Below are positions 18,044-35,183 of a stretch of DNA of 64,000 nt, piece after piece. Source of the DNA: Epithemia pelagica (Eukaryota; Protista; Bacillariophyta). Numbering within the stretch: the stretch's first letter is position 1; every line of letters starts with the position of its first letter. The stretch lies in NCBI GenBank assembly GCA_946965045.2, contig OX337229.1, positions 4,836,001 to 4,900,000 on the forward strand, given 5' to 3'. The position numbers and the translations under genes were made by a program. The notes below the pieces were generated by a model that saw nothing but the letters and a program-made list of their open reading frames with translations, made no database searches and was not told the DNA's origin.

Positions 18044-18788
18044 TGAACCTTATGAGCCACCAATTGTTTCAAAAACCCAAACCAGATGGAGTTATAAAAA
18101 GAGAGATTCGTATAAGCTGGTCCTCCCTTCTGGTCATTGCTGGCTTGGGAATGCAAGTCTAAACAACGATTAACATAATTATTTTCATCGCAGCATTGAC
18201 TGCTATTATTTACTCTGTCATTCTTTCTGCCCGGGCAGTTCGGCAGCAAGTTATTTGTAACTACAATATGCGTATGAGGCTTGGTCTATCAATACGGCTT
18301 TGTAACTGCCTAGCCTGTCGTGTGACCTCCTGCATGAGACTCTCCGGAACAATAGACCAACCTTCTTCCGCCAACACCTTGACAATAAAGTCAAACTGAT
18401 CATTTTTCTTGGCGCGAGGGTCATCTTGTAACGGTCGAGGTTCAACAACTCACGCTGCAGCTCCAGGAAACACTTTTCCTTTTTCTTGCCTTGATCAAAC
18501 GAGTAGATGAACCGACCTAAACAGGTGGAAGCCAACCTCTAACTGAGAAGCATGATGATTGGCAGACTAGCCCTTGCGTCGAGTAGTACAGCCATAATAG
18601 GGTCACGGAAAATGGGGAATCGAAATCCGACCAATTAGCGACCAGATGACTTCATCGAAGATATACGAGCAACGGGCACTGTTACCCAACAAATAGCCCC
18701 AAGAGACATATTGACTCACGGGGTCAATATGCACTATACAAATTGACCCACCCTGGGGCGTTGGTCAATCCGTTCCCACAAATCACAA

Positions 18789-20699
18789 ATGACTTTAATA
18801 CTCCTCTTTCGCATTATACTCCCTATCTATCCGTCCATTTTTTGGACTCACATCGCACCTCCATTGCTTTTAGGAAATCATCCCAACACGACAAACACGA
18901 TGACGACAATCAGAGTCAACCGTATTGCCAAACATAAGACAACCGGCGTTACATCTAACCGCCCACCTGGTGTCATTCATGTTCTTCGATCATTTCCTAA
19001 CGCAACGAAGCATCAACTTGGATGTTTCGATACCCCAAACTTCAAATTGCTTCTGACTGAGATGTACTCCTTGTGCATCCCCCCTACGTACCAAGAAGAT
19101 TTCATACGCCATTCAATGCGTTCTATTACTTCTATCTTTCCGTTGCCCATCGATACATCGGTTCCCGATATTCCCGTTCTTACAAGATGTATCATTGATG
19201 GGTTTCGTGCTCTCCAAGCACAACATGCTTCTTGTCTTCAAGAAGCTAATTTGATTGTAAGAGACGCAGTACCAAAGCAATTAACACAAGAACTACATGG
19301 ATGTTACTTGGTTGACTGTATCTTGTCCCGGACTCACAAGAAGCCAAGAATTTCAAACGAATCACGTTATTACGAAACAATCTACCAAACGCGTACATCC
19401 CGTTCGCTTTGCAACGATGAGAACGATGCGATTTTCCGTACGGTCATACTAATTTCCCCCTACTCTGCTTGCTTTTGGACAACGGCCTTTGTTGCCGACA
19501 GCTTCATCCCTACTGGTGACGTTTCCTTTGGAATTGGGTCGTCTATCACCAAGTCTCCCATGGCTTCTTTGCCTACCTCTTGGTTGCGACTTGTACAGAA
19601 AACAGGTTTGCCTGCACGGGGTGGCTTCATAAAAAAAATCAACCATGTTTGGTCGATTGACTTTTTACCAAGAAAAGCTTCTTTGCCTCGTGTCTATCAC
19701 TGTCTACATTTCAACGACGATGATCCGGATTCTCCACTCTTACCACCCGATCAAATTGGGTCCAACATATCCACTAAGGATTTACAAGCACAGCGTTCCT
19801 TGTACCGGTCCCTTTTTGACTCATCTCCTTCCAATAAGGTTGGTTGTCGACGGTATGTTTCAGGTGCGCTCTACCAAAACATTCCTCCTTCAGCTTACAT
19901 CTACGATCCATCTACAGCTGGCAATAATGCCTGTTTTCAAGCGTCCATCCTTGACGGAAATAAGCGTCCGATTTCCCAATCAAACATTGTGGTATGCTTA
20001 ATTCCACAGGAACACCAGTTATACAAGACTTTAAATGTGGCGTCTCGGTTATACACATCATCCAAAAGTTTCTCTAAAGGAGGAAATTGTCGACAAAAGA
20101 CTGGTGACAATGGTGTTATGAGCGCTTATGGACAAATGTTACATCGTTTTAAGAGACGCATCAACAGCATTTCCTTCCATGACAGCGATGGTCTTTTGAT
20201 TGAGAGAGTTCGAGAAACGTGTCATTTGGCAGCGGAATTCATATCAAATAATTTTCCTGGAACACTTTCCTTGTTGAAAAGTTTACGGACCATTGGAGGG
20301 CTCCAAATCCCAGACGACTTGGGTGGTGACGCCAACGGTTGCAGCAGTAACATTGCCATCAGTGTCGATCTTATGAACTCTTCACACATTGACATCAACG
20401 ATGCTAGTGTTGGAGTTGTTCTATTTTCAGAGACAGAGCTTGGATCTGCACGCAATTGGTACTTTGTCATGCCCAATGTTTTGATAAAAATTGACTCGAC
20501 AACTTACTCAGGTTTGGTAATTCGACTCTCCCACGGAGTTTCTATACTATTTGATGGACATGTTATCCGTCATTGCACAAGTGTTCATAAATGTGTCCGT
20601 TCCGCAGAGTCCCTTACGAGTGCCAAACGGGGACCCCACACTGTTGGCTGGTTTTTTGGGCTGTCCCTACCTGCCTTGACTCAAACCCCTGGAAGTTGA
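18789..20699 (+). CDS. TET/JBP-family 2OG-Fe(II) dioxygenase carried inside the transposon
   Basis: Intact 636-aa ORF. NSSHIDIND (HxD, His codon 20385), WYFVMPN, LVIRLSHGVSILFDG and IRHCTS (distal His, codon 20571) match the TET/JBP double-stranded beta-helix pattern. Confidence 0.78.
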   Translation: MTLILLFRIILPIYPSIFWTHIAPPLLLGNHPNTTNTMTTIRVNRIAKHKTTGVTSNRPPGVIHVLRSFPNATKHQLGCFDTPNFKLLLTEMYSLCIPPTYQEDFIRHSMRSITSIFPLPIDTSVPDIPVLTRCIIDGFRALQAQHASCLQEANLIVRDAVPKQLTQELHGCYLVDCILSRTHKKPRISNESRYYETIYQTRTSRSLCNDENDAIFRTVILISPYSACFWTTAFVADSFIPTGDVSFGIGSSITKSPMASLPTSWLRLVQKTGLPARGGFIKKINHVWSIDFLPRKASLPRVYHCLHFNDDDPDSPLLPPDQIGSNISTKDLQAQRSLYRSLFDSSPSNKVGCRRYVSGALYQNIPPSAYIYDPSTAGNNACFQASILDGNKRPISQSNIVVCLIPQEHQLYKTLNVASRLYTSSKSFSKGGNCRQKTGDNGVMSAYGQMLHRFKRRINSISFHDSDGLLIERVRETCHLAAEFISNNFPGTLSLLKSLRTIGGLQIPDDLGGDANGCSSNIAISVDLMNSSHIDINDASVGVVLFSETELGSARNWYFVMPNVLIKIDSTTYSGLVIRLSHGVSILFDGHVIRHCTSVHKCVRSAESLTSAKRGPHTVGWFFGLSLPALTQTPGS

Positions 20700-23600
20700 T
20701 GGAAATTCTGATTCATACACCTGTTTTCACTACATTTGCAGCTTGCGTCACAAGCCTGATTTTTCTTCCTGCACCCACAGTTGTTCGTCGTACATTGAGA
20801 ACTGCTTGCTTTACAAGAACATCCAGTGCCATAACTCTTAGTAGTACGTAATTTTGTTTTCAACTGTCCTTCCTGACTATATGCGATTCAATGAGCGTCA
20901 CGGATCGACAAAAAAGCCATTTTAGTGGGATCAAATGTTTTGTCAATAATCTGTTTCTGTAAATCTCGACGTGCTTTGCCCATTGGTGAAGAAGAATGAA
21001 TAACACTGTACGTGTCCCGTGCATACCATGTTGGTGTTCTTGTTCGTTTATCTCCTATAATCCCTTCAGGCAGTACCAATCTAACAGATGGTTGCAAACT
21101 GTGAGAGACCGCAAAAACAAGGCAGTGTATTCCATGGCGGCTCTGGTTTGCACAATCTCGAGGGTCAGGAAACAGGGCTACAGCGTCTCCAACGGAAACT
21201 TGGAATCCAGCTTGCTGGTTCATCCTTATCATTTTGGTCGCTTGTCTTCGTTGTTCCGCCTGGCGAGTGGATATATTTTCATATCGAGTATATTGCCTTT
21301 CTGTCGTATCGTCTATCATAAGAAAACTACAATTACATCCACGTACATCTGAGTATTACTATAGAGCAAATGGAATGGAAGGAGAACAACTTACTTCTTG
21401 GATTGGTTTCTTTGCGAGCGACGTGTTGGTTCTTCAGTTTTTTCTGTGTCCATGAAACCAGATAGATAATTCAAATATTGCTCTTTCAACGACGTCTGAC
21501 CGACCGATGTATATTCCTCATGGAACTTCTGCCGTAATGCAGAATTGAGATTTTTCCATGCTTTGATGATTATTTTCTTGAATATGTTTCCGACTGTGGA
21601 TCGCCAAGTATCTTCGGAACGTGTTGATGGATGTAGATCTTTCCTTTTCGAGGGATTTTTCAATACAGGCCTCATTAAATACATAATACTCAAAGAAGCA
21701 AGGACTCCACAGGAGTGCGAATCCTTTTGGATACCCATCATTCTTGTATCATATGCAATCGTCCAAAAGGCAGACGATGAGTGGCTGTCATCTGTCTGCA
21801 AGCAATGGACTGGACGCACATTACTGTCTGCTTGCTGTAGGAGTTCGTAATACCATAAAGTCGCCAGAGCACTCTTGTTCCACAGTGAAAGATCGTTTCC
21901 CCCCGACATTCCATCATAGACATCAATTTTTTTCTTGTCGATATCGATGTGGATTACAACATAATGGCTTTTGCCGAAACCAAGAGAAATAATCTCTTTA
22001 ACGTAGGGATCTTGATCTTTCAAACTATATGTCTTCATCTTCCATTTTCTTATTTCTGAAAGATCTGCTTTCGAATAGTTTGTTGTTGAATTATGGAACA
22101 GTATGGTCCTGTTGTGAAAGTAGTGCTCTACCAATGTGCCGAAGCTGTGTACCAACGAATGCGGTAGCCACTTTTGAGAACGATCTGAAAAGTAATGCTG
22201 GAGACATTGACCCGATGGGACTTGAAGTACTTTGGTCGATTGACCACAAGAACAATCTTTGCAAGAAAGGTGACCAACAATGAATTTGTCTTTCCTATTT
22301 GCACCGACGAAACTACCTGATGCAATAATTTGTTGGTACGCATTGGCCAGTGGAATTGTCTTCAGATGCCGTCGATCAGAAGGCTGTGGTGAAGGCATGA
22401 TAACAATCTCTTCTCCAGACACCACTTTGTTGTGATCTTGAGACGACTTGCCCAACACTTCGGTCAATTTGTCCGACTTAGGAGGCGATGTGTTGGACTC
22501 ACGAGGCAATTTGTCCGACTCTTGAGGCAATACGTTGGACACTTGGTGCAGTTTGTCCGACATCTGGGGCAATTTGTCGATCACTTTGGGTGTTTTGTCT
22601 GATTCTTGAAGCAATTTGTCAGAAACTTGGGGCGATTTGTCCGAACCAAGTGGTAACTTGTCAGACATTCGGGCCGATTTGTCTGTTTCTTGAGGCCATT
22701 TGTCAGACATTTGGGGCGATTTGTCTGTTTTTTGAGGCGATATGCCGGACACTTGGGGTGATATGTCGGACTTCTGAGGCAATACGTTGGACGCCTGGGT
22801 CGATTTGTCTGACGCTCTAGGCAATAAGTTGGACTCATGAGACAATCCGCGAGATTCTAAGGGCAATTCGTCGGACACTTGGGGCGATTTGTCTGTTTCT
22901 TGAGGCAATATGTCGGACACTTGGGGCAATTTGTCTGTTTCTTGAGGCAATATGTCGGACACTTGGGACGATTTGTCTGTTTCTTGAGGCAATATGTCGG
23001 ACACTTGGGGCGATATGTCAGACGCTTGTGGTAATTTGTCCAACACTTGAGACAAGACGTTGGATCCTTGGGGTGATTTGTGTGACCGTTGAGGTGATAC
23101 ATTGGAATCGTGAGCCAATCGGTGAGACAAATGGGGCGATTTGTCAGACTTCTGAGGTAATATGTCATGCTTATGAGGCAATTCGTCAGACAAATGGGGC
23201 GATTTGTCCGATTTCCGAGGGAATGCCTGCAACACTTGGGATGATTTGTCCGACTTGTAAAGTGGTTTGTCTTCATTGTCCTCATTATACGTGTCTTCAT
23301 CATCACTATCAGTTGATGAACTCATGACAGGCATGGAAGTGGCCACTTTTTGACGTGCCCTATCCCGGAGTTGGGAAATAAGCAATTTCCCACGTTTATG
23401 AGAGCTGGAGGCTCCAGAAGTGTCGGACTCAGCAGTATCTTCACCAGCCGATTCACATGGGAGACACGTTAGTTGGCCAGAAGACATGATATGTGGCCAA
23501 AATTCGTCTGGTATGTTGGACCAATCAGACTTTCGGAAGGTTTTGAAAACCTCATCTTCTGGTGTCATGTCGCTATCAGTAGAGTTTTGTTGAATGAGGG

Positions 23601-25463
23601 AACGGACCCTTTCTGTTGCCAGGTCTCCCAGTTCCTCAATATCATTTACCGTTAATTCACCAACCTTGGCATAATGTTCCGCAATTTCAATCGAGCCAGT
23701 GTTGAGACACCGCTCAAGAGGTGTTTCCCCATCTCTTAATTTGGATGAAGAGTATCCTGTCGCTCCTTGAAAGTGATTGAAAAAGGGGACTCCAAATACA
23801 GTTTGATAAGCTGACATGGGCGTGGTACCAGTGCGACGAATTGACCCATTCAGAGCAGTCATTGCCCGTCCTAGTGCCATTGTCCAGTTGAAATTTCGGT
23901 TGCCCTTGGACCATTCCTCCGCAACATAAGACTGAACGATATTGCGGATGCTCTTGTTGGCGTTTTCGACAGAACCTTGATCCCGGGGCTTTCTCGGACG
24001 GCCTTGCACGGTAGTAATATGCGGGTTATTGGCCATGAGCATTTTGATTATTTCTTTCCCACAAACTTCCATTCCATTATCTGTTTGGTAAATGGATGGA
24101 AAACCAACGATGCCAAACATCAGAGATAAATGGTGAGAAATAATGGCTGTATGTTTCGAAGGGACCGCCGCCAACAATACAAATTGAGTGAAGTGATCTT
24201 TACAACTCAAGATGTATCTCATCTCTACTCCATGGACGTCCTTATCGCCTGCACCATTTGCATCGGACATTTTAACCAAGTCGACTTGATACCGATCTCT
24301 AAAAGCCAGAGAACGGATTGGTTTTACGGCACCTTTATGAGGAGCTGCCCGTTTTTTCCTCATGGAACAACGTGGACATCCCATGATGTACGCCTTCACC
24401 TGACGACTGGTGATGTTTGAATATGTTTCTTTCAAAGCATTATACGTTGTTTCCTCGCAAAGCCAATGTCCAACGCTGACATGGTGCTCGCGAATGACGT
24501 CGAAAATTTCATCCGCCGAAAGAATCCGTTTCCCATTGTCATCAAATAAAACATAGTGTGTCTGTCCATTACGACGTACTTTCCAAACTTGACGGCGACG
24601 AAATTTCTTGTTACGCCCATGGGGGTGGAGCAACCTAAAGCCGAGGCCAGTCCGTGGATCAGGTTGACCAGGTAGAGGTGCTTTTGCGTGAGAGTCCCCA
24701 TCCTTCCAATGCCGCAAGACATAGATTTCTTGTTCGAGTTGCTGGCGGGACAACACGCGCGAATTTTTTGCGAAATCACGGATAGGCTTGGTGTAATCTC
24801 CCGAAGAAGTGTCAATGGTAAAAGAAGTGCCAAAGACATGCTCATTGAACAGCATGCGATGTTCGTTTACAAGACTTGAGTCGTTGTCCTCAGGAAAATT
24901 AGATGGGAGAATCGTCACCGACTTTTGCATGGAGGAAGACGAATTTCCTTTCTTGTTGCATGAGGCCGTCGGTTTCTTGGTGGAAGATTTAGAACCAACG
25001 GACCTTTTAGCTTTCCGTGAGTCTTTTTTCTCCTTGTAGCCAACCTCCTCCGATGAGGAAGAAGAGTTATCGGCACTGTCGCTTGTAGAATCTTCTGATG
25101 ACGACCCAGAATAAGTAATTCTGGAAGCGGATCGAGCGGTACGACGCCGGTCCTTTTTGGGTTCACGAACAGAAACATTTGAAACAGACGATGCCCGTCG
25201 TTTTGAATTCGTCTTGTTTCTTCGTCTAGGGGCAGACGACAGAGAAGTGGAACTGGTACTATCGTCATCGTTGTCATGTCTTGCTTTCGACGTACGAGTT
25301 TTTTTGTTCGATTCGGACGGTGTTTTTTCCTCTTTTTCCCCCGCCCATAATCAACAGATTGCTCTTGTTGTTCTCGCAACTGTTTCAGAAACGGCTGCAA
25401 CAGAGCAAGGTCTGTAGGGTCTATTTCAACCAGTTCCGTCTGTTTCCTTTTTTTCCTTGGCAT
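20681..25463 (-). CDS. Ginger-like transposase: H2C2 zinc finger + DDE integrase + repeat linker + Ulp1/C48 protease + spliced C-terminal CXC region; slightly decayed
   Basis: EHHVSVGH...CPRC; YQVDLV, QTDNG and GSVENAN (D-D-37-E); SHYVVIHID...VYDG...QKDSHSCG (His-Asp-Gln-Cys). Predicted intron 21327-21394; in-frame TGA at 20888-20890; CSCK...C...CGC...C...CKC...C at the end; frameshift near 25340 in the 5' extension. Confidence 0.85.
22460..23260 (-). repeat. Coding minisatellite, 21-nt (7-aa) units such as SDKSPQV / SDILPQE / TDKLPQV
   Basis: Dozens of degenerate in-frame units; near-exact 42-nt dimers at about 22870-23010. Confidence 0.9.
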
Positions 25464-25480
25464 GAGGAACTTAATTCTGC

Positions 25481-25676
25481 GGCAGAGCTACCACACTGTC
25501 GTCTCCCACCAACAGAATTACGTATCAACTTGAAAGGAAACGAATTCCACCAACAGGAAAGTAGAAACAGAACGTAATTCAATGGCAGAGCTACCACACT
25601 GTCGTATCCTACCAAAAGAATGACGTGTCAACTTCTTGAAAGGAAAGGAATTCCAACAACAGGATAGTAGAAACAG
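25481..25676 (+). repeat. Two-copy tandem duplication, period 103 bp, just upstream of the transposase start
   Basis: GGCAGAGCTACCACACTGTCGT...GTAGAAACAG at 25481-25570 and 25584-25676. Confidence 0.85.
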
Positions 25677-25871
25677 ACAAAGTTGACAGATGCAAACGGC
25701 ATGATAAATGAGAAATAGCACAGAAAAGGAGAAAAGGGAAGGAATATACTCATACCTTAGCAATCTCAGAAGATAGAGCAAGAAGAATGGGAAGTAAAGG
25801 TACGGAGTGCTTTCAGCAAGGAAAAGAGAGAGAGTGTTGTTTTTGGATTGATCTAGTAGTTACGTGTGTGG

Positions 25872-28800
25872 CTAAACTAAGAAATCGGTGGTGGGGTGAG
25901 GGGCCGGGGAATAGAGACAGTGTGGGTTGTATTGGTGGGGTAAGTAGCGGGTAGCCGGGCAGACGGTGAAAACGGAAGATCTTTGGATGCGTAATAATTT
26001 GCAACGGGAGGAGAGGTGCAGATCAACGTTGGAAATAGAGTCGAGAACGTGTTGTGACAGTGCGGTAATGAGTGCATGACCAAGGGTGAGCTTTGTGTGA
26101 TGGGTCAATGATTGCTGGAAAGGGGTGGATGGAGAAGACAGTGGGGTTTGTGCTCGTGGGAGGACGGCCGAGGGACCGTACTGCGACAGGTTGTTGAAGG
26201 CGAGGAAAGCGTCGGGGTGGGGGTTGCAACGGGCGGAACGGCCAAGCTGTGGTGTGGACCATGGTGGCGGTTCGGAGGGCGTAAGAGAGTAGCGGGGAAC
26301 CGGGCCGAAGAAAAGAGTTTGTGCGAAATGGCCGAGGCCTCCGAGATGATCAACCGAAAATGGGAGGAGGAGCAAGTCGTTGGTGTTGATGAGACTGGTG
26401 GCGGTGGTGTCATGGGTGAATTTGTGTCGAGCGGCGGTATGGTGAATCAGGGAGGCCTCTTGGGCAATGTGGGAGAAAGAAAAACCGTACCTTTTGTGCT
26501 CGGTGGAGGGAGTCGGGGGGAGATGTGGGTGAGGAGGGGGAACTGTGATGTCGATGGCGACATAATGAAAACGGTGGTCGGGGAGTGGGGGTTGTAACGC
26601 CATGCCGATATCGGCCGGGCGAATATTACGGGGGTGGTGTGGGAGAAGGTTTGTTGGTTCTAAGTGAATGTCGGAGCTGTTGCGGACCCAGGGTGTGCGC
26701 GGAGCCAAGTCCTGTAGGAGAAAGAAAACGGCATCACGGATGCGGTTGGACAGTTTTGTTTTGTGTTGTTTCGAGCAAGAGAAAAAGTGGTCGCCATAGG
26801 GATCGAGAATCGAGCGGCTGGGACAGTGGCAATGGTGAGGATAGTGGGAGGGGAGGAAGGCAATGCGGAGTTTCCGAGCAATGGCGACGTCGAAGATTTT
26901 GTTGGGTAGGCGGAAATGGTGGAGGAGACGAGATTGGTGCAGTGGTAGGCTGGTAAGTGGCGACAAAGCGGAAGGCAAAGAGCGTTGCAGTTCAGGGGGT
27001 GTAGAGTTAACAATCAACGGGAGGAGGTCGGTTTCCTGGGAGTATTGGGTGAGTTGGCGTTGGGCATCGGGCGGGTACGTGTTGGGGTTGGTTGGGTCGA
27101 AAGGAAAGGACGTTGGGGGGTAAAGGGAGGCCAAGGTTTCGTGGACGGTGAGAAGAAAGGGCTGAGTGGGGAGGTTGGGTGAAAAAAGGTGAGAATGGGG
27201 TGAGGGAATGGGGGAGGAGCGTGCGATGCGAATGGTGCGTCCGATGGCGTTGAGCAAGGAGGGTAAGGCGGACGAACGGTGGCAGCGGTAGCCAAGACCG
27301 CCGAGGGCTGTGGTGAGATTGGCTATGAGGAGGGAGTGGCGAGGGATTTGTTGGGAGTGGGTGATGTGCTGGAGGAAGGCGGTGGTAATGTCGTCGAGGT
27401 GTTGGGTGAAGGTGCTGGTCCAGAGGGTGTTTTGTGGGTGGAGTTTTGTGGGGTCTAGTTTGATTTGGAGGAGGATTTCGCTGGTGACCAGGTGGGACAG
27501 GGCGGGCAAAATGCAAGAACGGAAAAGGATGGATTTGGTCTGTGAGTTGTGTAGGGCCTGGAGTGCGCGTGCCTTGTTTGCAAGGGTGGCGAATTTTTGC
27601 TGGAGGAAGTGTTGGATGTAATCGGTTCCGCCAATGGGTTGTCCCAGGAAGCGGATCCCGGTGGTTATTTCGGCGTCTGTGGGGTTGTCCGGATTCAAGA
27701 ACTGGAGGGCGGCGAGGAGGTGAGATTGCTGTGGTGTGGGTAAATTGGGGAGGGGGCTAATGCCGTTGGTGGAGGTGAGTATGCGGCATTTGGATTTGTT
27801 GAGGTGTATGCCGTATTGTTTGCCGAGTGTTTGGAAATTGTCGAGGAATGGGAGCAGGTCGGTGTGTGGGACGCAAACTGAAGTATCGTCCATGATGCTG
27901 CAAGTGTGGCTTGTTCCGCCTTTGGTGTCGTCGTTGGAGTCGTTATTTTGGAGTCGGGAGGTGGCGAGTTGGCGGAGGAGGCTGTTGATTTATTTGTTGA
28001 GTGTTAGGAGAACGAGGCAGGCGAAAAGAGGGCTGAGGGGGCATCCTTGGCTAAATCCCTCGTCTTGGTTTATTGTGGCGTGGTTGCCTTGGGGGTCCTG
28101 ATACCAGTTGGTTGTCGTTGTTGAATACAACAGATCAAACAAGGGTAAGAGGGGTGTGGTTTCATCGCGAGAGGCCAGAATTTCGCGGCATCTCGTGCGC
28201 GAACATGCGTTGAACATGTTGGTGAGGTCTAACAAAAGAAAGGCTCTTGTTGGCAGAGGTTTGTTGTCCGAGGTTGTGATGAACTGGTCGATTTGTGTCT
28301 GGGTCATGTGGACCGCAAAGTCGACCCCGCCGCTGGTTTGGATGCCGTATTGGCCGTGTTTTGTCAGTATCGGTTCGATGTGGTCGGAGGTGGCGGTAAG
28401 TGCGATGGTGGCCGCGGTGCGTCTGAGGCCTGTGCCGATGCCTATTGGTCTCAATTTGTCGAGGTGGTTGATGTCTTTGTGTAGGGCAAAGAAGTGGATT
28501 GAGGCGAGGTACGAGCGGATGGGAGGCGGGATCTGGTTGTTTAGGATGAGTTCGAACAATGTTTTGAGGGAGTGGAAGTAGGGGCGGTCGGATTGGGGGT
28601 GGGAAGTGGAGCGGTGTAGTCCCATTGCCCGGTAGATGTCAATGGAGTCTGCGTAGGGTCCAGGTGCCGTGCCTTGGCTTAGGCGATGGAGTCCGTGTTC
28701 GAAGGTGGAGTCGCTGATGGAGTTTTGAAATGCGGGGAGGTATTGCTGTTGGCGTGTTTGTCGTGGTGGATCGAGGCGTGGCGGGTAGAGCGTTTGTTCA

Positions 28801-29705
28801 ACGATGTGGATGCGTGGGGGTGTAAGGCATGCTACGGGCATGGCTGCTGTGAGTCTGTTGTGGGCAGCGCTGGTGTTGCCAAGGTCGGCGGCCATTTGTG
28901 CGTACGGGGCCATGTGTTCAGGTGTCGGTGGGGTTGGGGTGGTTGGTATCTGTCGTTTTTTGTGTTTGTTGGTGCGACGGGAGAAAAAAGGTGTTGGTGT
29001 TGGTGGTGGGTGCCAGATGGAATTGTACAGGGAGATGAGGTCTCCTTGTTTGAGTTTGGCAACGCGGGCTTTGAGTGCGTTGTGGTTTGTGCGATGGTTG
29101 GTGTTGTTGATGGGGGCGAGGAGAAGTGCTTCGAGAAGTATGAGCAGTTTCCAAAATGGAGTGCTGTCGGTTTGATGTTTGGGGAGGGATTGGGGGTTGG
29201 CGGCGGTGGAGAAGGGTTGCGAGGCGGTGGTGGTCCATTGCGTGACTGTGTGTAGGGTTTGGAGGAAGAGGGAGCGGGCCTGGGGTTTGAGTCGGTGGAA
29301 ATTGGAGTGTCGGAATGGTGGGGGGGAGAGTTGGAGGGAGTACAGGAAGGATAGTTGGTCTGTCCATTGTTGTTGTTGCGTTGGTGTCAGGTGGCGGAGG
29401 GTTTTTTGTACGATGTCGGTGTTGGTGTCGGTGCGGGCGTGTTCTTTATTGACGTGCGCTTGTAGGTGGCGATTGGTGAGGTAGAGGGCGGTGCATTGAT
29501 TGCAAATTCGGCATGGGTGGAGGTTGACTTTTTGGCAGATTCTGTCCGTGAGGTATGTGGTGGGTTCGTCTTGGTGTGCTTGTTGGAGATGGAATCTGAG
29601 CTAGTCGGTATATGTCTTGCTTTTCGATGGGTGTGCGTGCCACGAACAATTCGGGATGGGGCAAGTTTGGCGTGGGGTTGTGCTGGGTGTGTTGGGGCTA
29701 GTCAT
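25872..29705 (-). pseudogene. LINE ORF2 (about 1277 codons): 2x C2H2, reverse transcriptase, CCHC, RLE; two in-frame stops
   Basis: CPIPNC...HLQQAH and CRICNQC...HVNKEH; LLDLTNMFN, GFSQGCPLSP, SIMDD; CHC...GDHFFSC, RPADI, AIDITV. One continuous frame broken only by TAG 29601-29603 and TAA 27990-27992. Confidence 0.88.
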
Positions 29706-32700
29706 GGTTGGTTCTGTCCCGAAGCTGGGCTGTGCTGGGAGTGTGGTGTTGGTCTATATCCATAGGTTCCGTTGTGGGGGATGTTGGTGTGGGGGTGAAG
29801 GTGGCTGTTGGGTCGTTGATGAGGTTTGTGGCAAATTGCCAAATGTGTCGGACGTCGGTGTCAGCAAAAGAGGTGACTTTTGACATGATTTCTTTGGTGA
29901 AGTGTGGGAGGAGGGAAGGGTCGTGGTCGCGTAGGTATTCGTCCAGGAGTTCGAATTCGTGGGTTGTGTCCTGGGAGAAGGTAGTGGTGGGGATTTGGTA
30001 TAGGAGATGGTCGGGTGGGCGGTTGTTTACGTCGAGGGCGTGGTTGGTGGTGTCGTTGGAGAGGAGGTTGGTGTCGGGGGGTGGGGTGGACCTGTGGTTG
30101 GGGTGTTCGTTGGTGTGGTGGTTGGTGTCGGGTGGGGTGGAACTGGGGTTGGTTTGTTCGTTGGTGTGGTGGTGGTTGGCTTGGTCGTCGTTGTCGTCTT
30201 CGTCGTTGTCTGCGAGTGCGGCAAACTGGTTGGAGGCTTGTGTCGTGTTCGGTGGCGTGCTGGTGGTGTGGGCCGGTGTAGGGTTGTCTTTCGGGGAAGC
30301 TGGTCGTTTGCGTGTTTGGTGGGAGGGGCTGTGGTCGGTTTGTTGGTCGTCGTGGTTCGTGTATGGTTCGGGGTCGTGTGGAGGGGTGGAGGGAGGGGTG
30401 GTGAGGTCGTGAATTGTGACTGGGTTGAATCGATTGGCTAGGGCTGCGAGTCTTTTGGTGCGTTGGGCGGGGGAGGGGCGGTGCGGTGAGGGTGACGGTG
30501 GTTTGGAAGTGATGGTGGCGGCGGTGGTGGTGAGTAAATTGGTGGGGAAGGCTTGGAGTTTTTGCTGGATGTTGGTTGGAGTGACGTGGAGGGTTCCTAG
30601 GTTACAATGGAGGAATAGGTTGTGGCTTTCGGGCGAGGGATTGTGGGCGGAGTATTGGGGAAAAATTCCTCTGTAATCTTTGAGATGATAGAGGGCGTCC
30701 CAGTCGTCTGGGGTGGCGTTTGGGTTGAGGTTGTGAAGCCGGACGACCGTGCAAGTTGCAAAGTTTGTTTCAATGGTTTTGAGACTGTTTATGTACTCGG
30801 AGCGTTCGGCCTGGTTTTCTGGGAAGGGTAGGAGGTGGAATGGTATGTTGTGATACGTGAGATCTTTTTTGTTGGCTGAGGTGAAAGCTTCTGTTGCTTC
30901 GATGAGTGTGTCAAATTTGTCGGTGGAAGAGGCTGAGATGATGAGGGTGGGGATAGTGAGGTGTGGTCCTTTTGGAGATTGGTTGCCCGTGATGGTGCCG
31001 TCTCGCAGGCCGAAATGGGTGGTAAAATCGACAGACATGTGGAGATCTGCCGGTAGAAAAGGCAGGAGTTGTTGGCGGATGGTGGAGAGTATGTTGAGAA
31101 AGGCGCGTTTGTGGTAGAGGGTCTTGGAGGGGAGGCCGGCCAGGATTCCGAGGCCGCGGCACTCGGTGTGGTTGCATGCCGGTGCGTAAAGACGTAACTG
31201 TGTGGCGCGCTCGTTGATGGTGGGCTGGGATTCCGGTGTATTCGGGGGGAGTATATCTTGTTGGCCTGTTGTGGGGTCGAGGGTAAAATCGGAGTGGTGG
31301 TGGTGGTTCCACTTTTGTAAAATGAATTTTCTGGCTTGTTCATGGAAGAGTTCGGGGTCGAATTGGTCTTCCGTTGCAGCTGGCTTGATTTTGACTTGGA
31401 ATGTGGACACGTGGCCTCTGGGTGTGTTGTTGTTGGTGCCGCGCCTGGTTGGGGAGGGGATTTTGGTGTTTTGGTATGTTATCTCGTGGACTGCGAGGAG
31501 GATGGGGTGTTCCAGGGACTTGTGGTGTTCGAGCGTGCCGTCGATGATGTTTTTGATTGTCGTGCCGCTGAGGGGTGGAAGGCGTTGTTCTCGTTGCGGG
31601 TCAGCGTTGTGATGGATGTATGCGTTCCAGATGACCATGTCGAGGGGGAGCTGGTTGAGTGTGTCGTCGTCGCAGATGTAGGAGTACGGGCTGGAGGGGG
31701 TGGGTGGCTTCAAGGGGTGTTTCGACGTCTTGTAAGGATTGGTTGGAGTGGGTTTCGTGGTGGTTAGAGTGGGTGTCGGGGTGGGAGGGGTGGAGGGCAT
31801 GATGGTCTTTGGGGTGGGAATGGTGAGGGACGGTGTGTTGTTGTTGGCCGCAGGGGTAGTGGTCGTTGGTGTCGTGGTGGCCGGGGTACGGTGGACGGTG
31901 GGCGGGGATTTGGGCTGGGGTTTGGACTTGGCCTGGAGAATCTTGTTGAAATGGTTGCCGGGGGTGGATGGTTTGGATTTGTTTTTTTTGTTTTTGGTTT
32001 TGTTGATGAGCGGTGTGAGGGTGGAGATGGGAACGTGGTTCGGGTCTTGGTGGGAGAGGCGGTTTTGGTGGGCGAGGGGCAGAGCCATGGTGGATGGGAG
32101 TAGGGAGGCGAGTGTTAGTAGCGACGTAATAGGCGTAACAATTTTTGGACAAAATAGAAATTGTGAGCCGATCTGAATATGGATAGTGGTGGAGGTTGGT
32201 TGGGATTGGTGTGGTGTTGGGTGGGCCTGGGGGGTTTGGGGGTAGTGTGTGTTAGTGTGTACTGATGGGGGTTCGGTGGCACGGGGCATCTGTTTTTGGC
32301 TTGCGTTTAAGGGTTCGGTTGTTCGTTGGTGTCGGGTGGTGTCTAGGGGGTGTCTGGTTGGGCATCCGGTGGGCGTCGGAGTGCATCTGGTGTGGGGCGT
32401 GTTGGGTGTACGTGGATGGGGATGGTGTCGTTGGCGGGTGGCGCTGTGTCTGGTTGGTGTCATGATGCATCTGGTTGGGGTCGAGTTGGGTGTACGTGGT
32501 GGTGGATTGTGTTGGTGGGGAATGTTCTGGCATCTGGTTGGTGTCGTGTTTTGGCTGGTTGGGGTTGGGCTGGAGGATGGATTCTGGTTGGAGTTGGGGG
32601 AAAAGATCGGATCCGGTGTCAGTGTGGAGGTGGCAGTAGGATTGGTGTCAGAGGTGGGTGGTTGGGTGTCAGCGGGCATCTGGAGTGGTGGTTGGGGCGG

Positions 32701-33273
32701 TAGGGGGAATGTGGATTTGGTGTCGGCGCAGGTGAGAAGGGGATGGCGTCTGGTCGGGTTTGTTTGGTACTGGTGGTTGGTGATGGGCTGAGGGGGACGT
32801 GGAAGTAGTGGGCATCTGGTAGATGTATGTTGGGTTTGGCTGGGCCGGCTGTTGGGTGTCGGTAGGTTGGGACGACGTGGTTGAGGGATGGTGTCAGTGG
32901 GGCAGCTGGGAGTGTGATCGCTGGTGTAAATGGAGGGGGGTGAAGGGAACTGGTTCTGGGGACAGGGTGGGGGACGGCGGTGGGAGAGGGAAGGATGGCG
33001 TCTGGGGGGTGGGGGGATGGAAGTTTGGTTAGGTGTTAGGGACCATGGCGTGTTGGGACGAGGGGGAGGAGAGGAGCGGTGGAAGGGAAGGGATAAGGGC
33101 GATGATAATATGGGTGGAGGCCGAGGGTTGGGAGGGAGGAGACTGCCAGGAGGGAGCGGGGAGTCGAAGGGGTGTGGTGCTGGAATGGTGGGGGAATGGA
33201 GTGCCGTGCGAGGGCCAAATCGTGCCGGAAGGGCCGGTTCGAACGGCGGCTTCCGGGGCCGGTGCACTCTCAT
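29698..33273 (-). CDS. LINE ORF1-like protein (Pro/Thr-rich); true start possibly the internal Met near 32078
   Basis: 1191-aa ORF whose stop overlaps the ORF2 start (ATGACTAG); its first ~400 codons are low-complexity and may be 5' UTR. Confidence 0.6.
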   Translation of the reverse strand: MRVHRPRKPPFEPALPARFGPRTALHSPTIPAPHPFDSPLPPGSLLPPNPRPPPILSSPLSLPFHRSSPPPRPNTPWSLTPNQTSIPPPPRRHPSLSHRRPPPCPQNQFPSPPSIYTSDHTPSCPTDTIPQPRRPNLPTPNSRPSQTQHTSTRCPLLPRPPQPITNHQYQTNPTRRHPLLTCADTKSTFPLPPQPPLQMPADTQPPTSDTNPTATSTLTPDPIFSPNSNQNPSSSPTPTSQNTTPTRCQNIPHQHNPPPRTPNSTPTRCIMTPTRHSATRQRHHPHPRTPNTPHTRCTPTPTGCPTRHPLDTTRHQRTTEPLNASQKQMPRATEPPSVHTNTHYPQTPQAHPTPHQSQPTSTTIHIQIGSQFLFCPKIVTPITSLLTLASLLPSTMALPLAHQNRLSHQDPNHVPISTLTPLINKTKNKKNKSKPSTPGNHFNKILQAKSKPQPKSPPTVHRTPATTTPTTTTPAANNNTPSLTIPTPKTIMPSTPPTPTPTLTTTKPTPTNPYKTSKHPLKPPTPSSPYSYICDDDTLNQLPLDMVIWNAYIHHNADPQREQRLPPLSGTTIKNIIDGTLEHHKSLEHPILLAVHEITYQNTKIPSPTRRGTNNNTPRGHVSTFQVKIKPAATEDQFDPELFHEQARKFILQKWNHHHHSDFTLDPTTGQQDILPPNTPESQPTINERATQLRLYAPACNHTECRGLGILAGLPSKTLYHKRAFLNILSTIRQQLLPFLPADLHMSVDFTTHFGLRDGTITGNQSPKGPHLTIPTLIISASSTDKFDTLIEATEAFTSANKKDLTYHNIPFHLLPFPENQAERSEYINSLKTIETNFATCTVVRLHNLNPNATPDDWDALYHLKDYRGIFPQYSAHNPSPESHNLFLHCNLGTLHVTPTNIQQKLQAFPTNLLTTTAATITSKPPSPSPHRPSPAQRTKRLAALANRFNPVTIHDLTTPPSTPPHDPEPYTNHDDQQTDHSPSHQTRKRPASPKDNPTPAHTTSTPPNTTQASNQFAALADNDEDDNDDQANHHHTNEQTNPSSTPPDTNHHTNEHPNHRSTPPPDTNLLSNDTTNHALDVNNRPPDHLLYQIPTTTFSQDTTHEFELLDEYLRDHDPSLLPHFTKEIMSKVTSFADTDVRHIWQFATNLINDPTATFTPTPTSPTTEPMDIDQHHTPSTAQLRDRTNHD

Positions 33274-34357
33274 CGTAGCTACCAGGAAGTCGACTGGGTG
33301 GCTTGGGTTTGGTTGGGTCTCGCTGATGCGTCAATCGTTTCGTCTATCGTCGTTTCGTCTCGATGTTCTTGAGTTGCGCTTTCTCTTTTTTGGTTGTAAC
33401 AGTAATCAGGAGAGGTGTGTGTTGGGAAAAATGAAGCCTGCCATGGTGTGACGGTGTGACAGCGCTGTCAATCACGATATATAAACATATTATCCTCATA
33501 TATAGTGGATATTGAAAGGACTACACAAGAAATCAGAGTCGTTGGCCATATTTCATTCATTCATAGATGGATATGGTTACGTAGAGAAGTATGGGCATTA
33601 ATTTAGAAAATGTACAGATAATCACTATTGTAATCTGGGACCAATAAATTCATATCGGGGTGAAATAAGGAAATCTTTATCGGAAGAATGAAGATTCGTA
33701 CAATGAAGAATCGGTTTATATGAGAATTCCCAGCTTGGTTTTATGTTGGAAATAAGTATTAAATGAAAATATAGACAAAAATATGGTCTTAATGAAGGCA
33801 TGTCGGGCTTACACGTGTAATAGTCAATTTGTAGTATGCATTTTGACTCATGAAAACTCATTTGTAATTTGTAGAAGACAAATGGGGCGTAAAATGGCCA
33901 ATTTTGACAAGATGTGCGATGTGTCTGACACAAATCCGACATATTGACCTACGCCATTCGACAAATCGACTAATGGGACATAATCGCAGAAGGGTCGCAA
34001 ATATGCCTTTGGGGGACAAAAATGAGAGACGGGGGACGATTTCTGAACGATGGTGTCAAATTTTGCATGGAGAGTTTTCAATGGAAAAGTCATGAATTGG
34101 TGCGGTCCTACCATTGCCATTGTCGATATGACTATTAGTACGATGTATCTGCAGAAGGCCGTCATCAACGGCATCATGGAGGAGGCGTATGAGGACGATA
34201 CCTGAGACGGACACATAAATTTTTTTTTCGAAAACAAAACGATAGGAAATGATAACTCGTTAGGAAATTCAACGCTAGAAAAGAACGATGGGGTGTGAAA
34301 TCGGACAAATTACAAATGAAAATGCGACTCGTCCATTTGTGGAATGCGCAATTTGTT

Positions 34358-34936
34358 CAAGGTTCCTCGGTCGACGTAAAGTGACGTCTTAGACGTTGGA
34401 CGTGACGTGACCAGGGTCAGCATGTCACGTCTCCCAAAATCTATTGACGTAGACGCGACGTTGAAGAAAAGAAATCTACCTTTAGTATACTGCCACCCAT
34501 GCCACTCCTTACGTTCATTTTAAGTGTGTTTTAGCAATCCTGATGTAACAATTGACAAGGTAACAGGTAACAAGCATGCAGATGCATTTGTCCCCACACC
34601 CCGTGATCTCTTACACAACACTGAGATGTCTGGCGGGACTCACTAGCCAATCAACAACATACACACGTAACACTAGAAGACATTCGTCTGCCTATTTGGT
34701 GTCATCAAGCATAGTAAGGCAAAGGAAGAGGCAATAAGGATGAAGGATGGAGGGGTCTTCAGCACCAGCAATACGGAGTAGCAACAATAGCTTCAACTAT
34801 GTGTATTAATGCAAGTATCTATCGTAGTCATATCCGCTGTCAACGTCTCTCAGCGTCTCTCAACGTCTACGTCTACGTCCACCGTCAATCCGTCACGTCC
34901 ACGAAAATCCATTGACGTGACGTACGAGGAACCTTG
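34358..34936. mobile_element. 579-bp MITE inserted at the inner edge of the Ginger right TIR
   Basis: 12-bp TIR CAAGGTTCCTCG; 7-bp direct repeat ATTTGTT at 34351-34357 and 34937-34943; many GACGT motifs in inverted orientation at both ends. Confidence 0.8.
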
Positions 34937-35183
34937 ATTTGTTGGGTAACAGCACCATTTCAATCAAAGAGACTACCTACCTAATACATTCGTTTCCGAT
35001 TTAACGAGTGCCTTCAGATGCGTACAACACAGCTCTATGATGTACACCGCATTCTTGATCGAAGGGAAATGAGCAAATAACAAGAGAAGCACACTTGCTT
35101 GTCCAAAGAAGTTGATCGAATCTGACGAGTATCGCACAGAGAGTCGTGAAAGGGACTACCTACACCGTGTTGTATCGTTGATC

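Follow-up and report, generated by a model that had tools for sequence, protein, structure and literature searches.

A 64-kb stretch of the genome of the diatom Epithemia pelagica, which we call the window, holds a transposon at 18680-34951 that carries two convergent genes: an integrase-type transposase and a dioxygenase with the predicted fold of the TET/JBP enzymes. Copies found elsewhere are labeled L001 and so on and keep their own coordinates. The ends of the element are marked by a 15-bp string, TGTTACCCAACAAAT, that occurs exactly twice in the window, at 18680-18694 (+) and, inverted, at 34937-34951 (-); chance alone would give about 0.2 matches, even if 2 mismatches were tolerated. 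The first-pass annotation of this DNA had described perfect 15-bp TGT...ACA terminal inverted repeats (TIRs) and a GCAC target-site duplication (TSD) around the gene pair, and both proved to be exact matches. The features of the element, and of the insertions it has received, are as follows.

18676-18679: left TSD, GCAC; the same 4 bases stand at 34952-34955, and L001 has GACC instead.
18680-18694 (+): left TIR, a TGTNR-type end; its exact inverted partner is at 34937-34951, and the ends are identical in L001.
18789-20699 (+): candidate TET/JBP-fold dioxygenase gene, a 636-amino-acid (aa) open reading frame (ORF), open throughout, with motifs R435, H533-x-D535-x-x-D538, and H582-G...R591...R594-H595-C-T-S.
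20681-21326 (-): last transposase exon, with a CXC cysteine cluster (about 20705-20830) and, in the window copy, a premature TGA at 20888-20890.
21327-21394 (-): putative 68-nucleotide (nt) intron, GTAAGT...TGTAG, which joins the main transposase frame in frame to the CXC exon; one base differs in L001.
21395-24930 (-): main transposase exon, with an HHCC finger and DDE core (about 23941-24510), an SDK/PQ linker (about 22441-23253), and a Ulp1-like protease (about 21631-22233).
About 25847-33387 (-): nested non-long-terminal-repeat (non-LTR) retroelement, similar to a long interspersed nuclear element (LINE), about 7.5 kb, with TSD TTTTGG and RVT_1 fragments; missing from L001 at precisely that point.
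34358-34936: nested miniature inverted-repeat transposable element (MITE), 579 bp, with a 12-bp TIR, CAAGGTTCCTCG, and a 7-bp TSD, ATTTGTT; it lies inside the right TIR and is missing from L001.
34937-34951 (-): right TIR, an exact inverted match to the left TIR.
34952-34955: right TSD, GCAC, directly outside the right TIR.

With the nested LINE and MITE, the element spans about 16.3 kb; its clean form is 8.3 kb. This agrees with the earlier estimate of about 8 kb once both blocks are removed, as the clean copy L001 measures 8,348 bp and has neither. The LINE-like insert at 25847-33387 is not part of the transposon, and joints free of it are also present in contigs from public read sets (contigs of up to 509 kb). 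The right terminal 15 bp are still intact because the ATTTGTT duplication made by the MITE supplies seven of their bases. At the junction of the two genes, the CXC-bearing minus-strand frame ends at 20681, inside the dioxygenase ORF. The resulting 19-nt overlap of the two 3' ends had been reported in the first pass, and the gene calls in L001 have the same overlap.

Tracing relatives of the plus-strand ORF by exact-protein look-up (near-identical and 49%-identical proteins) revealed further loci within a single public assembly. The sister copy L001:6346-14693 shares the perfect TIRs of the window copy and sits between other flanks with its own TSD, GACC; its alignment with the window begins at the first TIR base. 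With the internal repeat tract excluded, 78 of 7,635 aligned bases (1.0%) distinguish the two. Together with the remaining loci, the copies fall into three families.

Family A: the window copy and L001; about 1% diverged outside the repeat tract; TSDs GCAC and GACC.
Family B: L003 (about 7.4 kb), L002 (with a 1.5-kb internal deletion and TSD GATT), and L010; dioxygenase 49% and integrase core 56% identical to those of family A.
Family C: L008:6345-14604; TIRs matching at 13 of 15 positions; TSD GACC/GCCC; dioxygenase 48% and transposase 39% identical.

The TSDs of the window copy (GCAC), L001 (GACC), and L002 (GATT) are perfect, and those of L008 (GACC/GCCC) and L003 (GATT/GAGT) have one mismatch each. 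In all three families the transposase is convergent to the dioxygenase, and in six independent copies with homologous ends the dioxygenase lies inside the transposon. The first-pass annotation had allowed that other copies might never contain the dioxygenase; instead, L001, the three copies of family B, and the family C copy L008 all carry the gene pair. In public read sets, the element has about fourfold the word depth of its flank, and contigs that bring in different flanking sequence join it at 18675 and 18679, either on the TIR boundary or barely beyond it. Taken together, these observations show that the element moves as one unit and takes along both convergent genes, with their overlapping 3' ends, and that its transposition has been both recent and repeated.

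Two family B copies on different contigs, L002 and L010, share one flank only (left of L002, right of L010), and their internal deletions are not the same; they may represent haplotigs or the outcome of recombination between copies.

We next consider the dioxygenase. Codons 1 to 37 of the window ORF lie outside the model and have no counterpart in families B and C; the true start is probably Met38, at 18900. A profile built from four paralogues retrieved 666 cluster representatives at an E value of 1e-3 or better. Among 67 aligned relatives, PF12851 and PF20515 were each matched weakly by only one (E values of 5.5e-3 and 1.4e-3). An AlphaFold2 model computed on the alignment of relatives had a mean predicted local distance difference test score (pLDDT) of 85.5 and a predicted template modeling score of 0.86. 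In a Foldseek search of the PDB with this model, ranks 1 to 25 were all members of the TET family (TET2, CMD1, CcTet, and NgTET1; E values of 4e-10 to 9e-5), followed by AlkB-type enzymes. The best matches in a VIA structure search were likewise all TET family, with a gap of 4 to 8 Z units between that family and AlkB/FTO and with TET2 as the best structural match. Among Swiss-Prot models, JBP2, TET3, JBP1, TET2, TET1, NgTET1, and CMD1 lead the structure matches. Structure prediction thus sides with the TET/JBP-like identity first proposed from the letters, since the best fold matches are all TET family rather than non-nucleic-acid 2-oxoglutarate oxygenases. The protein of about 600 aa is modeled as a double-stranded beta-helix of the TET/JBP kind with a complete Fe(II) triad. 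Compared with human TET2, Naegleria NgTET1, Coprinopsis CcTet, and Chlamydomonas CMD1, it has about 10% sequence identity and no sequence match through Pfam or the PDB. Compared with solved TET/JBP structures, it has an extra N-terminal alpha/beta region, and a counterpart of the second 2-oxoglutarate arginine is not obvious.

Conservation of the motif residues among the aligned relatives, at the positions that could be scored, is as follows.

H533, D535, and D538: 67/67.
R435: 66/67.
H595: 64/65.
H582: 57/66.
R594: 56/65.
R591: 50/64; Arg also in the three closest paralogues.

In CMD1, TET2, and NgTET1, HxD and a distal His form the iron triad, and an Asp or Asn three residues after HxD (NgTET1 D234 and CMD1 D350) hydrogen bonds to the N4 amine of the flipped 5-methylcytosine (5mC) (PMC7854593). 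The invariant D538 occupies the position of this base-contacting Asp, an equivalence drawn from motif position. As the distal iron ligand we prefer H595 to H582, as it is better conserved and would fit both the TET2 motif and the distance of that motif from the C-terminus; for the alternative, H582, the spacing from HxD equals that in NgTET1 and CMD1. The stretch H582-G..IL...R...H595-x-T-S presumably parallels the TET2 stretch that ends in H1881. Two arginines of TET2, R1261 and R1896, bind 2-oxoglutarate (PMC7854593). R435 is a plausible counterpart of the first, and R591 and R594 precede H595. All catalytic residues are kept in all six copies of the dioxygenase, despite only 48 to 49% protein identity between families. 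The ratio of nonsynonymous to synonymous changes (dN/dS) within families is 0.26 and 0.48, from small counts.

On the opposite strand, the ORF at 21391-24930 comprises 1,179 codons and matches three Pfam families: Integrase_H2C2 (PF17921, the HHCC finger; E values of 1.7e-5 in family A and 3.1e-4 in family B), rve (1.3e-3, below the Pfam gathering score), and Peptidase_C48/Ulp1 (PF02902; 3e-3 in family A and 1.9e-3 in family B, sub-threshold but at the same profile positions). Four relatives all keep the HHCC and the D, D, and E residues. Among solved structures, retroviral integrases come closest, with a phmmer match to the integrase of mouse mammary tumor virus (E value of 6e-5) whose alignment spans the core. 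Within the protease region, His, Asp, Gln, and Cys are invariant in Ulp1-like order in four aligned sequences and would be the catalytic residues. A low-confidence model of this region (pLDDT of 56) found Ulp1, NEDP1, and SENP1/2 as its best Foldseek matches (E value of 3e-5). The interval at 21327-21394 has the makings of an intron and probably is one. The transposase, of about 1,390 aa, thus combines an HHCC finger, a retroviral-type DDE core, a repetitive linker, a Ulp1/SENP-like protease, and, beyond the probable intron, a CXC cluster.

The linker between integrase and protease (22441-23253, minus strand) is a long degenerate array of SDK(S/L)PQ-type repeats, 210 bp longer in L001, and families B and C have analogous linker repeats of different sequence. 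A 182-aa ORF at 24915-25463 was considered as a further gene of the element and dropped, as it is not conserved in families B and C.

Several groups of eukaryotic transposons use integrases of this kind. Ginger1 elements have an HHCC finger, a 4-bp TSD (CCGG/CCGT), TGTNR ends, a GPY/F motif, an OTU or Ulp1 domain, TIRs of 40 to 270 bp, and a few short introns, and Ginger2 elements have an HHCC finger, a 4- to 5-bp TSD, and TGTNR ends, without GPY/F (PMC2836005). The HHCC finger is absent from IS3EU/GingerRoot elements (6-bp TSD, ends mostly TA..TA), from IS481EU elements (TSD of about 4, 15, or 25 bp), and from Polintons (PMC10045372). The window element has the HHCC finger, a 4-bp TSD (GCAC, GACC, or GATT among copies), TGTTA ends, and a Ulp1 domain, and it has no reverse transcriptase or LTR. 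Families A and C have TGTTA at each end, and family B has it at the right end. Given the HHCC finger, DDE core, TGTTA ends, 4-bp TSD, and Ulp1 domain, the element is better placed with Ginger than with IS3EU/GingerRoot. The first-pass annotation had called it Ginger-like, naming TGT termini, 4-bp TSDs, and Ulp1 fusions as Ginger hallmarks.

The likeness to Ginger1 extends to TGTNR ends, the 4-bp TSD, a transposase with HHCC and DDE, the C-terminal Ulp1 protease, and short introns. The element differs from Ginger1 in its TIR (15 bp versus 40 to 270 bp), its targets (GCAC/GACC/GATT versus CCGG/CCGT), its extra CXC exon, its second gene, and a host outside Metazoa. CCGG or CCGT was found in none of the five TSDs. 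The GPY/F motif, whose lack of conservation is a Ginger2-like trait, was not conserved downstream of the core in an alignment of four sequences, and YPYY was not seen in that small sample. By its sequence features, we class the element as Ginger-type with a mixture of Ginger1 and Ginger2 traits. The short TIRs, the unusual targets, the unconserved GPY/F, and the sub-threshold rve match would also suit an element that belongs elsewhere, in IS3EU/GingerRoot, in IS481EU, or as a solo derivative of an LTR retrotransposon. We consider this very unlikely: the HHCC finger is not found in IS3EU, GingerRoot, IS481EU, or Polinton, whose TSDs and ends differ as well (PMC10045372), a Ulp1 domain is present as in Ginger1, and the clean copy L001 has two genes only, with no reverse transcriptase, RNase H, or LTR.

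To look beyond this genome, we scanned JGI metagenomes with the motif [WF]DGR[VIL]IRH[CG], which identified 11 loci; an earlier metagenome scan with a 4-sequence alignment had given no confirmed locus. In two of the loci, L011 and L013, the dioxygenase is about 36% identical and is followed directly, in convergent orientation, by a homologue of the CXC exon (tblastn E values of 7e-20 and 9e-18). Homologous CXC exons are thus convergent to the dioxygenase in L003, L008, L011, and L013. A maximum-likelihood tree built from 38 relatives gathers the five Ginger-linked dioxygenases into a single clade (support 94/92), with families A, B, and C together at 100/100. The gene pair is old, as three families of this genome and two environmental contigs keep the pair or its junction.

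This history bears on whether the ORF is merely a passenger, a host gene fragment captured by chance and without function. DNA transposons are known to capture host genes, and the dioxygenase comes with no evidence of expression. Against this, the frame is open and the catalytic residues are intact in all six copies of the three families, whereas several transposases are broken by stops and deletions; environmental relatives at 36% identity preserve the linkage as well, and dN/dS within families, from small counts, is 0.26 and 0.48. We disfavor the passenger explanation and regard it as extremely unlikely.

Two other environmental loci tie the same enzyme family to a different transposase. In L006:1699-8365 and L017:3-5624, a dioxygenase about 28 to 31% identical is convergent to a Plavaka transposase (PF18759; E values of 3.5e-12 and 5e-7), and both dioxygenases fall outside the Ginger-linked clade in the tree. 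One enzyme family therefore rides at least two unrelated transposon superfamilies. The dioxygenase might alternatively serve transposition itself or act on something other than a DNA base, such as RNA, a protein (the transposase or chromatin), or a transposition intermediate. Such a role would suit the strict linkage to the transposase and the overlapping 3' ends in all families, and the next-best fold matches are nucleic-acid repair and RNA enzymes of the AlkB/FTO type. The gap of several Z units separating these from the TET family speaks against it, as does the carriage of relatives with the unrelated Plavaka transposase, from which it follows that the dioxygenase is not tied to integrase chemistry. 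We therefore judge a role in transposition or on a substrate other than a DNA base to be improbable.

Another locus was examined as a possible link to a KDZ/MULE-like transposase and rejected. This locus, L004:10001-18387, holds a third paralogue of the same genome (P0003), and 3 kb away is a 1,085-aa DUF6729/MULE-like protein that weakly matches CxC5, a KDZ-associated domain. The similarity of the paralogue is lost just before the distal His motif (H595), so that the dioxygenase is truncated, and no Ginger remnant is present; L004 is probably a broken copy beside another transposon. For the relatives L005 and L007, there was no recognizable transposase within 10 kb.

The window copy is itself decaying. 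Its TGA at 20888-20890, where L001 has CGA, cuts off the CXC cluster; the first-pass annotation had explained the interruption by an intron before CXC, and it is instead a CGA-to-TGA nonsense mutation private to this copy. The dioxygenase ORF, which had been called intact, is open for all 636 aa and to that extent the description stands, but it carries a private R591H change: the window has CAT (His591), and L001, families B and C, and read-set contigs have CGT. L001 in turn has its own transposase nonsense codon, at the position matching window 23715. Read-set contigs have the intact state at all three sites (for example, G at 20890), and therefore an intact copy may exist. In read-set contigs of X1 and X3, the left flank GCAC-TGTTAC (to 18685) directly joins 33112, inside the nested LINE, with no microhomology visible at the joint. 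These contigs represent an allele or strain variant with a deletion of 18686-33111, which removes both genes and most of the LINE. A stop before CXC, R591H, two nested insertions, and a deletion allele all mark the decay of this copy.

The differences between the window copy and L001 also hold a signature of methylation. Transitions affect 27 of 688 C/G positions in CpG and 26 of 2,655 other C/G positions (3.9% versus 1.0%; odds ratio of 4.1, p = 7e-7), and changes from CpG to TpG or CpA make up 35% of all differences. Such an excess is the signature of deamination of methylated cytosine, and we therefore conclude that the elements are CpG-methylated in the host germ line. In another diatom, Phaeodactylum, methylation has been reported to be confined to transposons (PMC12344493).

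Our favored reading, to which we assign a probability of roughly 0.6, is that this is a cut-and-paste transposon of the Ginger kind whose TET-fold dioxygenase would oxidize 5mC and so counter silencing. We infer both the 5mC oxidation and the anti-silencing role. In this scheme, the integrase would bind the TGTTA... ends, excise the element, and reinsert it through a 4-bp staggered cut. The dioxygenase, whose N-terminus is basic in families B and C, would enter the nucleus, flip out 5-methylcytosine, and oxidize it, with D538 in the place of the Asp that contacts cytosine N4 in NgTET1 and CMD1. Oxidation would remove or alter host CpG methylation on transposons, and the element would stay transcribable.

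Several observations weigh against this scheme. The dioxygenase ORF gave no Pfam match up to an E value of 10, Tet_JBP included (PF12851 and PF20515), and a sequence search of the PDB with profiles of 4, 67, and 65 sequences and with a 29-residue motif found no solved TET; membership in the TET family rests on predicted structure and motifs. The transposase carries a nonsense mutation in both sequenced copies of family A. Neither gene had RNA support in public runs of unrecorded type, which behaved as genomic and contained no spliced joints. Copies still decay by CpG transitions, and any demethylation must therefore be incomplete. Finally, no conserved Arg could be aligned to the one that binds the C5 carboxylate of 2-oxoglutarate (TET2 R1896 and NgTET1 R289), where N615 or H617 stands; the alignment at this position leans on what we take to be the TET2 sequence. 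If this second Arg is missing, the co-substrate may therefore differ, as it does in CMD1, a TET homologue known to use ascorbate.

A second reading keeps both the transposon and the TET fold and has the enzyme make another DNA modification, either hydroxylation of thymine (JBP-like, giving 5-hydroxymethyluracil) or a CMD1-like adduct of the co-substrate on 5mC. Such a modification could mark or shield the DNA of the element itself instead of erasing 5mC. The invariant Asp of HxDxxD suits cytosine more than thymine, and TET2 is the best structural match; we consider a different modification to be unlikely, while giving it some weight. A broader proposal is that the TET-fold clade invisible to Pfam, with its 666 representatives, is recurrent cargo of unrelated transposons outside fungi, Ginger in this genome and Plavaka in environmental contigs, and, for want of the usual second 2-oxoglutarate arginine, uses another co-substrate to place a novel base modification that acts against CpG silencing. 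We hold this as a rather doubtful, speculative extension. Oxidation of 5mC by the Ginger-borne enzyme remains the reading we prefer.

Transposons that carry TET enzymes have precedents. A link between TET and KDZ transposons was reportedly made by Iyer et al. in 2014. The statement in the first-pass annotation that the TET-transposon link is mainly one with KDZ elements is now out of date, because TET-carrying (TET+) DNA transposons are known from about ten lineages in fungi, namely, Dileera, Kyakuja, Zisupton, hAT, Harbinger, IS3EU, EnSpm, ESTA, Plavaka, and Helitron, and anti-methylation is the role proposed for them (Kojima 2025; PMC12730594). As in those elements, the dioxygenase gene described here sits within the transposon ends, next to the transposase, along with which it is copied; the dioxygenases diverge strongly, some being recognizable only by structure; and the gene seems to switch superfamilies, with relatives here beside Plavaka. 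Unlike those elements, the carrier is Ginger-type, which is not among the reported lineages, and the host is not a fungus. The nearest Atlas cluster consists mostly of Bacillariophyta, and a RIO1 kinase of the same assembly was placed by Atlas as eukaryotic and no more narrowly. The enzyme also differs from the fungal PE type, which has HxE, in having HxD. In literature searches, of which some phrase searches were weak, we found neither Ginger nor diatoms connected with TET/JBP in any paper, PMC12730594 included, in line with the earlier note's own awareness of none. We therefore rate as new the Ginger superfamily as a carrier, a host lineage outside fungi, and a TET clade missed by annotation.

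TET-carrying transposons are the clearest candidates for elements that fight silencing by DNA methylation, and until now fungi were the only hosts described. With this finding, a TET clade overlooked by standard annotation gains a concrete protein that can be expressed. Where algal methylation is largely confined to transposons, such a gene would make an arms race over methylation directly testable.

The nested insertions have features of their own. At the termini of the LINE-like insert, no LTR or TIR was found. Its first ORF (29698-33273, minus strand) encodes 1,191 aa with no Pfam match, and the N-terminal third is extremely rich in Pro, Thr, and Ser. The MITE is present as a single copy within the window; elsewhere, public read-set contigs hold more copies of it with other flanks, as well as copies of the element that are free of the MITE.

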